Source: Salpingoeca rosetta (Eukaryota > Protista > Choanoflagellata). Taken from it: 64,000 nt of DNA. Under the pieces are notes generated by a model. It saw nothing but the letters and a program-made list of their open reading frames with translations, was not told the origin of the DNA and ran no database searches. The translations under genes were made by a program, and so were the position numbers. Location: NCBI GenBank assembly GCA_033442325.1, contig JAWQFM010000027.1, positions 667,945 to 731,944 of the forward strand. The letters are read 5' to 3'. Below are positions 7,825 through 27,600 of this stretch, piece by piece (the first letter of the stretch is position 1; the number at the start of each line of letters is the position of its first letter).

Positions 7825-10800
7825 ATGATGATGCCTGGCGGGCGTGGGCGAGGTCTCCGGCTGCTGGTGTTGCTGCTTGGTGTAGCAGCGGTCTGCGTTC
7901 ATGCCAGTGCACCAGCACCAGCACCAGTACCAGCACCAGCACCAGCACCAGCACCAGCACCAGCAAGCAGCAAGCACAACCATGAGGTGCGTGTGTGTGC
8001 GTGCGTGTGTGTGTGTGTGTTCGGATGGGTCATGTGCTTGATGCGTTGAGCTTCATCTCCTCTCAGTCTCTCCTTCGCTCTCTCTCTCTCTCTCTCGCAC
8101 CTGTTGATCGTCCTCGTGGTCCCAGTACTGCAGCTGTCGCGATGCCAACAGCACCGATGCGTCTCACTGTGTGCCTGTGGCTCACCCCTCCAACACACAC
8201 ACACATACACACACACACACACACACACACACACACACACACACGCACACGCACGCGCACGCGCACGCGCACGCGCACATTGCAGGCTGGCACGTTGTGC
8301 ACGGACGTCGGCATGACTCTGAGGCGTCTCACAACGACGTTGCAAGCATTCGGCGTTCCAGTGACACCATCATCTGAACACCGCTTCCGCTCACGCACGC
8401 AGCAGAGCCAGCACGGCAACTTCACGCCTGCCGCAGCAAGCACTGCGAGGACGACACGTGCCCGTGCCCATGTCGCAATCGACCTATCATCGATCCAACG
8501 CATGATGAGCGCCTTTGGCTGTGCCCCAACGAACGGCCCCAGTGAGGACAAAGGATGGCAGCAGCAGCACCACCACCACAACCAGCAGCAGCCAACGCCA
8601 AGCGCACACAATCAGGAGGCATTTCCACAGACCCCACCTGCACCAGCACATAAAGGGATTGATGGAAACAGCAGTGGCAATAACTTCCACCTCAGCCCTT
8701 CTCGACACCATCAACAACAGCAGCAGCAGCAGCAACAGCAGCACACGCGTGTGCGGCGAAGCGACGAGCCCACCGTGCAGGCGGGCCAGTGCACGCTGGC
8801 GAGCGTGATTGACGGGTCGTGCCCTGGTGCCGACGCTGGGGGCCGACTCACCATCACCTTGGCTGAGGGCGACGCGGTGGACGACAGCACCGATGCAAGC
8901 ACGCTGCACGCCATCTCCCCACCTGTCCATGAGCTGACGGTGATCGGCCACGTTGAAGAAGAGCCCCTGCAATGGCTTGTCAACAGCAACTGGACATTCT
9001 GCACGGTGATCACGGTTGAGGGCGTGCGCTTCCCCACCTTTCGACTGAGCATCCTTAACCCGTTGATGAACATCCACACCGTCACCATCCAGGACAGCGA
9101 GCTGCTCCGCGCTGTTGACGCTCGCAGCTTCCAACACACGGCGGCGCTGGTCACGTTTCGCGTGATCCACTGCTCACTGACATCTGTCCCTGATGTCTCC
9201 GGCATGGCCACGCTGAGGATCCTCAACTTGCAAGGAAACCGCGTTCGCCGCGTGGGCAAGAGCGACCTACAAGGCACGCCGCAGCTGCAGCAGCTGGCCT
9301 TGAGCGAGAATGTCATTTCCAAGGTCGAACTTGGGGCATTGGATGGTCTCAGCCAGCTGCAGACGTTGATCCTCGCTGCAAACAACATCACCAGCACCGC
9401 TGGACTCTTCCGCTCCCTACCCCGCCTCGGCATCCTCCAGCTGGCACAGAATCCAATCACACGGCTTGAAGCTGATGTGTTCCACGCGCTGACTCGACTG
9501 ACCAGTCTCTCTATCGAGTACACGCGCCTGACCAGCTTGCCGCCGACGCTGCTGGCAAAGGCAACTCGCCTCGTCCGCCTCTTCCTGACACACAACTTCA
9601 TCACGTCTCTTCCAGACACCATCTTCTCGAGCCTGTCATCGCTAAATGAGCTGCACCTCTTCAGCAACAGACTCACATCCCTGCCACCGCGCGTATTCAA
9701 AGACTTGACGGCGATGACACGCCTCGACTTGCTGAACAACGACATTTCTGCTCTGCCCGTTGGCATTCTCGACACGTGCACGCGTCTGCTCTTCTTCCAG
9801 TGCAACAGCAACCGCCTCACTGCGCTCCCTCCAAACCTGTTTGCCAACGCCCCCAAACTGCAGCAAATCTCCTTTGCCAACAATGCCATTCGCACCGTCA
9901 ACAACGCCCTTGGGCTCGCCGCCCTCACGGCGCTGCGCCTGATCAACCTGGACCACAACCAGTTGACGGACCTGCACCTTGGAGCAATGCTTCCCAGCGC
10001 TGTGCTGCTGAGTTTGGACAACAACCCAATGCGCGCTGTGCCAGACCTGAGCATGACTCCTGCACTGGAGACGTTTCGCATGAGGAACCATCGCATCACG
10101 CACATCGACCTGGCACCGCTCCTCGCTCTGCCCCGTTTGGGCGTTCTGGAGATTGGCGCTTCCCTGCAGGCACAGGCTAAAGCGGTGTTGCCGGCCAACA
10201 GCAACATTGCCAACGTTGCGCCCCTTTCCACCCTTGGCCTGGAGAATGTGGACATCAGCGCCATCGTTTCGTCACTTGGGCAATTGGCATCGCTGAGCCT
10301 AGATGCCCTGCACGCGGGCTGGCCCGGCGCCACCAGCGACACGCTTCCCATGAGTGCCCTGTGCGCCGTGCTTGCAAGCAACGTGCGGGAGCTCCGTATC
10401 GCCAACACGGACCTCAGCACGATTGACCTGTGCCCTGACAAGGCATTTGACGTGCTTCTTCTCACGGACAACAGGCATCTCGAATCCGTTACGGTTCACG
10501 ACCCACTGCGTGAGCTCAACGTGTCAGGCTGCACTCGATTGACCTCCATCGACGCACCTCCCATCGACATTCTCGACATCAGCAGCACCAACTTGCCGCT
10601 TACGGGTGCACTGTGCACGCGGTGGGGGCGACGTGTTCTCTTCGCCCGCAACTTGGGCGGAGTCGTCGACATTCGCGATGCCATCCTGAGCATGCGCAAC
10701 TGTCTTGAGCATGTGGACGTGTTGGATTTCTCGGGCAACGCGTGGGTCAGCGACGTGGACGAGATGAACCGCATCACAGAGCGAACAATTGCGCTGTCGA

Positions 10801-24677: not shown

Positions 24678-27600
24678 ATGACCGTCTTCTCTCTGGCCTT
24701 GATCGTTTTGGTGGCGTCAGCGTCAGGGATCCTCGACAGCACCTTGGCACTCGACGTCGGCGAAGAGGTCGAGTGCAGTCTTGAAGCGAGTAGTTGTCTT
24801 GTGGTGTAGTGGTGGTTATGTTACTTGGTTGCACTTAGACTTGTGTTTGTTTGTTTGTGTGCTTGTCTGCTGTGTTTTGGTGCGTTTCGTTTCCTGTTCA
24901 ACTTGTTGAGCCATTATTCTATTCTATTATTCCAGCGTGCTGTAGCGTGCATCTGCATGCAAAGCTGTCAGTGACGCACACACTCCTGCAGACACACACA
25001 CCCTCCTACCCTCACACACACTCACACCCTCACACACACACACACACACACACACACACAATCACGCACTGCACACACAATCACACCCTCACACACACAC
25101 AATCACGCACTGCACACACAATCACGCACTGCACACACGTACACGCCTACACGATGCTGCAGGCTGCCGTGTTGTGCGATGAGGTGGAGACCACTCTGAA
25201 ACGCGTCAAAACTACACTGGTTAAGCACAGCGTGCCCTTCAGCACCACCGCGGGCATTCACAAGCAGTCCCATGATGATGTACATCTTCACACTGAGAAC
25301 GGCGCTGCTGTCAACCACACCCATGTGGGCCCACGGTTGACAGTTGACCTGTCCTCGATCCAACGCATGATGCGCGCTTTTGGGTGCCCAAAGAAGGCTG
25401 CACGCAAACTTCAAAGACCCACAAACTTCCCAGGCACAAGACGACACAACCCTCAACCCAATATCTTGAGTGACAACAACACCGCACCTAGCTCCCTTCC
25501 CAGGCGGTTCTCTCGCATGCGACGAAACAGTGACCCAAACGTGCAGCAAGGCCAGTGCACGCTGGCAAGTCTCATTGATGGCTCTTGTCCAGGCACAAGG
25601 CGGGGTGGACTCACCATCACACTGTTCAAGGATGACCTTGTGAACGGAAGTGCTGATACAAGCACGCTTCGCACGCTTTCTCCCGCTGTGTTTCGACTCA
25701 CACTAAATGGCCATGTCCAGCAGCCCCTGCTCCAATGGCTGCTTCAAAACGGCGTGTGGACAACTTGTCGCTTTCTAACTGTCGAGGGCGCGCAGTTTCC
25801 TACATTCCCGTTGAGCGACCTCAACCCACTCAGCGATATTCGCAGTATCCGAATTCGCCACAGCGATGTTCTGCGGGGAGTAGATTCAAGCGGGTTCAAC
25901 CACGCGAAGACCCTCACCGCACTCCGCATCATCAACTGCTCCCTTTCATTCGTCCCTGATGTTGCTGGCATGACGTCACTGAGGACCCTGAGCTTGCGCG
26001 ACAACCGTATCCGTCAAGTCACTGCGGAACACTTGAACGGGTTGTCATCGCTGCGAGAGCTGTCATTGGACACTAACCTCATTGCTCGAGTCCAAGCAGT
26101 GTCGTTCGGTGACCTGACAGCACTGCGAAGGCTGACCATCTTCTCAAATGACATTAGCGCCATCCCCCCAGGCCTGTTTCACCCACTCACAGCCCTCACG
26201 CGACTTGAGCTGCAGCGCAATCCCATCCGACAGCTGGACGCCGATGTGTTCGCTGCACTTTCGACGCTTGACAACCTCATCCTCGAAAGCACACTGCTCA
26301 CGAGTTTGCCGCCAACTGTATTTCGAAACACCACTCGCTTAACTGTCCTTGGCTTGGCAAACAACTTCCTCACATCCCTTCCCGAGACCGTGTTCGCCGG
26401 TCTCTCGTCCCTGGAACACCTGCAAGTCTTCAACAACCGACTAACGTCGCTAGCATCAGACGTGTTCCAAGACTTGACGGTGCTAACAGCCCTGTTCATT
26501 GACAAGAACGAGCTGCGTTCATTGCCACGTGGCCTCCTTCAGTCCAACACGCGCCTGCGTACTTTCTTCTGCAACGACAACCGTCTGACTGCGCTTCCAA
26601 GCAGCCTGTTCGCCAACACGTCTGCGCTGAACCAGGCATCTTTGGCGACGAATGCTCTTCGATCCATTGATGCCGTCATCGAAGCGGCGTCCTTTTCCTC
26701 TCTGAGCTTCCTCGATGTGCATGACAATCAATTGACGCGTGTACATCTACCCAGGGCTCTGCCTGCCCTGCGTGAATTGGCCTTCAATGACAATCCAGTT
26801 CGAGAACTGCCGAACCTCGACATGCTGCCTGAGTTGAGGGTTTTTCGATTGCAACACCACCTGGTAAGACGCATCGACCTGGCAGCTTTCCTGGCGCTGC
26901 CCCACTTGGAAGTGCTTGAACTTGACGCTGCCCCTGAGGCCGAGTCCAAGGCAGTATTGTCAGACTCCAGCGCGGATCGCATTGCACCTTTGGCAAAGCT
27001 GAGCGTGGAGAATGTGGACATCAGCGCCATCGTTTCGTCACTTGGGCAATTGGCATCGCTTAACCTAAGTGCACTGCACGCGGGCTGGCCCGGCGCCACC
27101 AGCGACACGCTCCCCATAAGTGCCCTTTGCAGCATGCTTGCAAGCACCGTACAAGAACTCCGCATCGCCAACACGCATCACAGCGGGATTGACCTGTGCC
27201 CTGACAAGGCATTTGACGTGCTTCTTCTCACGGACAACAGGCGTCTTGAATCCATTACCGTTCACGACCCACTGCGTGAGCTCAACGTGTCCGGCTGCAC
27301 CCAGCTTACTTCCATTGATGCCCCTCCCATTGACATCCTCGACATCAGCAGCACCAACTTGCCGCTCACGGGTGCACTGTGCACGCGGTGGGGGCGACGT
27401 GTTCTCTTCGCTCGCAACTTGGGCGGAGTCGTCGACATTCGCCGCGCTGCAGCAATTGCACACAAATGCCTTGAGCAAGTGGACGTGCTGGATCTCTCAG
27501 GCAACTCATGGCTTCGTCATCAAGCAGAGATTAATCGCGTTGTGGAGACGAAGATTGTCTTGTCACATGACATGTTCTTGAGCGCTGACTTTGGTGAGAT

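Follow-up and report, generated by a model that had tools for sequence, protein, structure and literature searches.

Leucine-rich-repeat receptor kinases of Salpingoeca rosetta share an N-terminal module and a candidate proprotein-convertase site

We analysed a window of 64,000 nucleotides from the choanoflagellate Salpingoeca rosetta (contig C27 of the 55.4-Mb assembly) that holds two paralogous receptor-kinase genes with leucine-rich repeats (LRRs) in the ectodomain. As judged from sequence, both are members of a family that counts about 50 type-I LRR-TKL receptor kinases in S. rosetta and further ones in Barroeca and Hartaetosiga. Between the signal peptide and the LRRs these proteins carry a small module with two predicted helices, a disordered linker and an R-x-R-R motif, and we consider it likely that the family is made as pro-receptors that are cut by a proprotein convertase at this motif. 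An N-terminal module that appears undescribed and a nearly invariant candidate convertase site are common to one of the largest receptor-kinase families of this organism.

The source annotation lists both genes as 'TKL protein kinase', and the product of gene 2 is identical to the public protein P0001 ('TKL protein kinase [Salpingoeca rosetta]', 1,315 amino acids). Both proteins are ordered as signal peptide, LRR ectodomain, single membrane span and TKL kinase. Each gene has four exons, namely a short signal-peptide exon, a 3.3-kb exon that codes for the entire ectodomain, the membrane span and the kinase N-lobe, and two small kinase exons (for coordinates see Table 1). The N-termini of the exon-1 products and of seven public models are hydrophobic as judged by eye. 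Exon 2 matched Pfam LRR_8 with expect values (E) of 1.7e-39 for gene 1 and 1.6e-39 for gene 2, and gene 1 exon 2 also matched PK_Tyr_Ser-Thr (E 3.9e-18). In each gene the membrane span is a 23-residue hydrophobic run followed by RRYRG. Foldseek matches of the LRR solenoid include LRRTM2, Toll, LGR4/5 and TLR13. The initial annotation, made from the DNA alone, had called the kinases TKL-type. This assignment holds by sequence, given the source annotation, the catalytic motifs HRDLKSGN (intron-split as HR/DLKSGN), DFG and GTPLYMAPE, and a best solved relative that is the Raf-like kinase CTR1; TAK1 and IRAK4 were also among the best, with IRAK4 lower.

The same annotation had placed RVRR before a Ser in gene 1 and RMRR before an Asn in gene 2, and both positions proved exact (Table 1). 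The N-terminal 246 amino acids served as the query for a search of the S. rosetta genome, which returned 62 matches (about 53 loci, 17 on the contig of the window); searches used single-exon references or stored protein identifiers. The N-termini of 47 paralogues were read, 41 of them parsed automatically and the rest by eye or from the genomic reading frame. R-x-R-R was present upstream of the LRR N-cap at 46 of the 47 loci. It preceded the Cys-x9-Cys cap in all 41 automatically parsed N-termini, and reading by eye added four more, L039 (RPRR), L040 (RNRR), L046 (RRRR) and L047 (RVRR). Downstream of the cap the same proteins contain the motif 10 times in 20,047 residues, so that its occurrence upstream is far beyond chance. 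Conservation across paralogues was the point on which the initial annotation had staked its proposal, and besides these loci the motif was found as RIRR in Barroeca and RSKR in Hartaetosiga.

One public model, XP_004988566 (P0017), was considered as an exception that lacks both the second Cys of the module and R-x-R-R, and was rejected as a gene-model artefact. The model splices out about 86 in-frame codons (L056:1501-2700, C27:531056-532255) that encode a poly-Asn-rich linker with the second Cys (GC), RHRR and RVRR. The intron is probably a false call over low-complexity sequence and thus an annotation error, and the genomic reading frame of this locus keeps both features.

Positions P4, P2 and P1 of the site are Arg, with Lys almost never substituting, and P3 is free, being occupied by at least 13 different residues. 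The 41 genes use 36 distinct codon quartets at the site, with every one of the six Arg codons represented at P4, P2 and P1. Because the Arg codons are this diverse, the constraint acts on the protein and is old, and a motif at the level of the DNA was rejected. A PEXEL- or RxLR-type export motif was rejected as well, the invariant residues being Arg at P4, P2 and P1 and not R-x-L. Position P1′ is Asn, Ala, Glu, Asp or Ser in 39 of 41 sites and is never aliphatic. The site had been described as lying directly before the cap, which is correct for the closer paralogues, where 7-12 amino acids separate the two, and incorrect for divergent ones, where Thr-rich linkers place it up to 67 amino acids upstream. 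Because this distance varies from 7 to 67 amino acids, R-x-R-R appears to be a linear motif in a flexible region, and we rejected the idea that it is a structural element of the cap. The linkers between the second conserved block and the site are 27-119 amino acids long and unalignable, consist of 46% Gln/Pro/Ser/Thr and 12% hydrophobic residues, and are mucin-like in some members. With the signal peptide before it and the membrane span after it, the site is on the luminal side of the secretory pathway.

Upstream of the site, the two conserved blocks with unalignable spacers that the initial annotation had described were recovered in both genes (Table 1), the first with the consensus LCxxVxxTL...VP, as was the cap, QxGQCTLASxIDGSCPG; overall, the exon-2 proteins have 57% identity, and between the blocks they cannot be aligned. 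The blocks form a module of about 60-100 amino acids with the layout Cys-helix, short strand, disordered loop, short strand, helix-Cys. An alignment of 24 paralogues has the invariant positions C3, T9, L61, M68, G72 and C73, and 20 of the 24 have an N-x-S/T sequon in the loop between the helices. Most members have two or four Cys upstream of the site, and L002, L007, L023 and L027 have three. Modelling of the prodomain together with the LRRs, which the initial annotation had proposed, was done with AlphaFold2 on 460 amino acids of gene 2 with the paralogues as alignment. The model has confident helices at residues 2-19 and 62-70 (predicted local distance difference test, pLDDT, of 81-84) bridged by short strands; residues 30-55 and 77-122 are predicted as disordered, and pLDDT exceeds 95 in the cap and LRR solenoid. 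RMRR occupies residues 116-119, inside the second disordered stretch, over which pLDDT is below 50. When the 76-amino acid module was modelled alone, both helices had pLDDT 84-88, and because this confidence was kept the module looks like an autonomous mini-domain. Module confidence was equal with and without the LRRs, which neither supports nor excludes docking on the receptor. The two terminal Cys, one at the start of helix 1 and the other just past helix 2, could form a stapling disulfide in the model.

Searches for relatives of the module gave the following results. Pfam had no match in the first ~190 amino acids of exon 2, Foldseek found none in the PDB for the model of the module, an ESM-Atlas shape search returned only hits to unrelated families with template-modelling scores below 0.5, and an Atlas feature search had no usable match. 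Word-index protein searches with the N-terminal regions returned only the query, and these blanks are uninformative, as even 50%-identical paralogues were missed. In the genome, a module-only profile matches just this receptor family, in open frames of 1,000-1,500 amino acids or in degenerate copies. On present evidence from sequence and model the module is an orphan, as distinct from a proven new fold. An alternative gene model of L002, XP_004989521 (P0018), has about 150 amino acids ahead of the pro-module with an EF-hand-like look ('DTDDDGLLSWEE'); this extra N-terminus may reflect a first exon used alternatively or a fused gene model.

The N-terminal region was made into a profile, with which 1.84 billion representative proteins were searched at E <= 0.001. 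The search returned 16 proteins, 13 from S. rosetta, two from Barroeca monosierra and one from Hartaetosiga balthica. The Hartaetosiga protein (P0014) has the Cys-helix and helix-Cys elements followed by HRSKR/A, which contains RSKR, and then the cap, and one Barroeca protein (P0016) carries RIRR. Conservation of module and site beyond S. rosetta, which the initial annotation had proposed to look for, was found in these two proteins; the second Barroeca sequence is discussed below.

The furin/kexin reading of the motif agrees with the enzymes encoded in the S. rosetta genome. Four loci with a P domain were found, among which L031 combines Peptidase_S8, a P domain and GF_recep_IV (the furin-type Cys-rich domain) and L032 combines Peptidase_S8 and a P domain. 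The catalytic domain of L031 matched human furin with E 2.1e-109 and yeast kexin with E 3e-80. Two kexin-like genes have been described in Monosiga (preprint 10.1101/802215).

From this evidence we infer that one of the furin/kexin-type convertases of the cell probably cuts after R-x-R-R late in the secretory pathway. The cut would split an N-terminal fragment of roughly 110-250 amino acids from the mature LRR receptor. For this fragment we prefer the role of a generic folding or export aid, or of a biosynthetic safety catch as in sortilin; a generic role is favoured over that of a paralogue-specific ligand because the module is conserved while the LRR regions have diverged (30-56% identity). 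A more far-reaching suggestion, which we put forward only tentatively, is that the excised module is a shared regulatory element, either a family-wide autoinhibitor with a common partner or a secreted signal, and that unicellular holozoans evolved convertase-gated maturation of receptors, in a receptor family that animals lack.

Several observations weigh against maturation by a convertase. Paralogues from the same genome are not independent of each other, and gene conversion is active in this family. The 47th locus, L053, has KHRR or RSSR only and not R-x-R-R. The residue at P2′ is acidic (Asp or Glu) in 22 of 41 sites, which is not the textbook preference of furin. The cross-genus sample consists of three sequences, one of which (Barroeca P0019) has only KILTRR, and the profile search at the above threshold returned no Monosiga member; the module may be confined to some craspedid choanoflagellates or may have changed too far to be detected. 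Known substrates with acidic residues next to the cut include Notch1 (RQRR/EL) and IGF1R (RKRR/DV), and KILTRR as well as KHRR/RSSR are compatible with a relaxed furin rule.

The alternatives to pro-receptor maturation with a generic fragment differ in how much of it they retain. One that we regard as fairly unlikely has the cleavage step in common with it and departs from it only in what the cut is for: the pro-module would be released as a family-wide secreted signalling peptide and not be a chaperone or safety catch. The confident prediction of the module alone, its predicted glycosylation sequons, the even Cys count of most members and its conservation while the LRRs diverge are all in keeping with a peptide of this kind, and the freed propeptide of sortilin (spadin), which is active on its own, provides a precedent (PMC2854129). 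No receptor for such a peptide is known, however, and some 50 genes for nearly one peptide would seem redundant.

It is unlikely that R-x-R-R is conserved yet left uncut, serving as a basic linear motif for the binding of a sulfated glycan, a component of the extracellular matrix or a partner, with the module staying on the receptor as a membrane-distal domain. A module that is confidently predicted alone could indeed be a functional distal domain, and the mucin-like linker of some members would suit such an arrangement. The restriction of the invariance to P4, P2 and P1 with P3 free is nevertheless the signature of a proprotein-convertase site and not of a general basic patch, and Lys is almost never found in place of Arg. 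The site is also predicted to be disordered and exposed, in a secretory pathway with furin-like enzymes, and to escape them would need special protection.

We consider it very unlikely that cleavage takes place extracellularly instead, through a trypsin-like enzyme that is secreted or through a bacterial protease, and is the activating signal in the manner of protease-activated receptors. The exposed, tribasic nature of the site and the bacterial diet of S. rosetta would suit such a mechanism, which the initial description of these proteins as 'proteolytically armed' receptors permits. A trypsin-like sensor would not require Arg at both P4 and P2, however, whereas the strict R-x-R-R with free P3 matches the furin/kexin enzymes encoded in the genome, and none of the tests run points to an external protease.

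The identity between the two window paralogues is a patchwork. In bins of 50 amino acids, identity is 16-56% in the pro-module and the N-terminal LRR region and 78-98% in parts of the C-terminal ectodomain, the juxtamembrane region and the kinase N-lobe, a pattern in the two second exons that fits gene conversion of the 3′ half. Elsewhere in the genome, L003 and L005 (C25:175728 and 166380) and L007 and L023 (C27:790712 and 648814) are pairs with an identical pro-module, linker, RVRR and first cap residues that diverge sharply just past the cap. The positions of these transitions suggest recombination breakpoints that swap a 5′ cassette of signal peptide, pro-module and site among receptors. 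That the conservation is a functionless by-product of concerted evolution among tandem paralogues is nonetheless most improbable, and gene conversion as its sole cause was rejected, for although the patchwork is obvious and the two pairs share identical 5′ modules up to the cap, conversion would have homogenised the linkers too, which are unalignable, and the three Arg are kept through 36 different codon quartets and in Barroeca and Hartaetosiga.

Eight dispersed degenerate copies (L057-L064) were found at C4:2040250, 1096000, 1483700, 933500, 1983300 and 358600, C17:265900 and C15:1046200. They have a short-loop pro-module in which the first Cys is changed to Ser and a common frame switch ahead of RVRR; in several the cap is fused directly to a kinase fragment with stop codons, and L064 includes a masked run. 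They have the look of pseudogenes that were dispersed through segmental duplication. The Cys-to-Ser change in block 1 on contig C4 was considered as evidence on covariation of the Cys residues and rejected, the copies being frame-shifted and truncated.

Table 1. Features of the two receptor-kinase genes in the window (positions are those of the window).
Feature	Position	Strand	Basis
Gene 1 exon 1: start codon, signal peptide, (Ala-Pro)n tail, phase-0 GT donor	7825-7986	+	sequence; in frame with exon 2 across intron
Gene 1 intron 1: (CA)n/(CGCA)n microsatellite, 3′ end ttgcag	7987-8285	+	position matches gene 2 and other paralogues
Gene 1 exon 2: pro-module, linker, RVRR, LRR ectodomain, membrane span (11034-11102), kinase N-lobe to HR	8286-11653	+	open frame and Pfam
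Gene 1 pro-module block 1, LCTDVGMTLRRLTTTLQAFGVPV: Cys then helix 1	8295-8363	+	Cys and Thr invariant in 24 paralogues
Gene 1 pro-module block 2: helix 2, Cys at end	8481-8522	+	L, M, G, C invariant in 24 paralogues
Gene 1 disordered Q/H/P-rich linker	8523-8747	+	unalignable among paralogues
Gene 1 RVRR, candidate proprotein-convertase site; expected cut before Ser 8760	8748-8759	+	sequence
Gene 1 LRR N-cap QAGQCTLASVIDGSCPG, two invariant Cys	8778-8828	+	alignment; gene 2 equivalent has pLDDT >90
Gene 1 exon 3: kinase catalytic loop	11854-12290	+	sequence
Gene 1 exon 4: kinase domain end and stop codon	12469-12569	+	sequence
Gene 2 exon 1: signal peptide	24678-24767	+	splice agrees with public model P0001
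Gene 2 exon 2: pro-module, linker, RMRR, LRR ectodomain, membrane span (27800-27868), kinase N-lobe	25163-28470	+	open frame, Pfam, P0001
Gene 2 pro-module block 1 (helix 1, pLDDT 81-88)	25172-25240	+	AlphaFold2
Gene 2 pro-module block 2 (helix 2, pLDDT 81-84)	25346-25387	+	AlphaFold2
Gene 2 RMRR, candidate proprotein-convertase site, in stretch of pLDDT <50; Asn next	25514-25525	+	sequence and AlphaFold2
Gene 2 LRR N-cap	25544-25594	+	alignment and AlphaFold2
Gene 2 exon 3: kinase catalytic core; beyond the range of the initial annotation	28654-29102	+	P0001 model
Gene 2 exon 4 and stop codon	29264-29364	+	P0001 model

All six introns of the two genes (the first in Table 1, and 11654-11853, 12291-12468, 24768-25162, 28471-28653 and 29103-29263) bear long (CA)n/(GT)n tracts, and because the introns hold these microsatellites the raw open frames read through as 'THTHTH' and 'CVCVCV'. 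Intron positions are conserved, with phase 0 past the signal-peptide exon and phase 2 within the Arg codon of HRD, and are the same in many paralogues. Between the receptor genes, at 12600-24600, the window contains long mechanical open reading frames such as 16970-19465 on the minus strand (831 amino acids) and 20998-22269 on the plus strand (423 amino acids); the frames in this interval had no Pfam match except a sub-threshold ZIP transporter at 21867-22781. At 30001-32000 the GC content falls to 0.44, compared with about 0.55 elsewhere, with a strong AT skew.

Work on how animal cell signalling originated has S. rosetta as its main experimental model. The organism is tractable, and to our knowledge the receptors for its responses to bacterial and environmental cues are still unidentified. 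The candidate site offers an experimental handle that is expected to affect the whole receptor family at once. If the family is indeed processed as proposed, the dependence of receptor maturation on convertases that is known from the insulin receptor, Notch and sortilin would also apply in pre-metazoan lineages, and to a receptor architecture that is plant-like by convergence.

LRR receptor kinases of choanoflagellates have already been published, whereas the pro-module and the site appear undescribed: no description of either was found in the literature searched on choanoflagellates, convertases and LRR/TKL receptor kinases. The choanoflagellate 'Kinase TLRs' (Richter et al. 2018) combine LRRs, a membrane span, a kinase and a C-terminal TIR domain (PMC6040629). 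They share with the S. rosetta family the choanoflagellate-specific order of LRR, membrane span and kinase, but membership in this group was rejected, as P0001 ends with 'KDHHFA' right past the kinase and there is no TIR among the precomputed Pfam hits. The seven LRR receptor kinases of Monosiga brevicollis make up a clade specific to their lineage, in which the LRRs were acquired independently of plants (Dievart et al. 2011, PMC3268121). They resemble the S. rosetta proteins in having a signal peptide, an LRR ectodomain, a membrane span and a receptor-kinase/TKL-group kinase; with about 50 members as against seven, the family in S. rosetta is much larger. That article makes no mention of a propeptide or a convertase site.

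Plant LRR receptor-like kinases (RLKs) have the same overall architecture as the S. rosetta family, including a helical N-terminal cap with a Cys pair ahead of the LRRs. We know of no plant LRR-RLK that is made with an N-terminal propeptide removed by a convertase. With regard to the kinase, the best solved match of the S. rosetta domain is the Raf-like CTR1 and IRAK4 ranks lower, a ranking among solved structures. In the published tree the choanoflagellate LRR receptor kinases form their own clade (PMC3268121). By sequence the resemblance to plant LRR-RLKs appears convergent, in agreement with the initial annotation, which had called these proteins a plant-RLK-like convergent receptor family, and with the independent origin published for Monosiga.

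Among animal receptors, the insulin receptor, IGF1R, MET, Notch (at S1) and TLR7, itself an LRR receptor, have R-x-[KR]-R sites in the ectodomain that are cut in the secretory pathway as a step of maturation. Plexin-B is cited as a further furin-processed receptor (PMC8011033). In these animal proteins the cut is internal and the resulting chains are held together by disulfide or non-covalent bonds, whereas the predicted cut in the S. rosetta family would remove a discrete N-terminal module. The closest functional analogue, by analogy of arrangement, appears to be the propeptide of sortilin and SorLA. Sortilin, SorLA and SorCS1 are type-I receptors with a propeptide right after the signal peptide that furin removes at an R-x-R-R-type site in the trans-Golgi (PMC6331531, PMC6923373, PMC2854129). 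The propeptides of sortilin and SorLA have been proposed to help folding or to prevent premature ligand binding (PMC6923373), and the sortilin peptide, once freed, is itself active (PMC2854129). The two groups have no relationship in sequence or fold. These Vps10p receptors have a Vps10p β-propeller ectodomain and no kinase, whereas the S. rosetta family has an LRR solenoid and a kinase, and a long disordered linker after the module.

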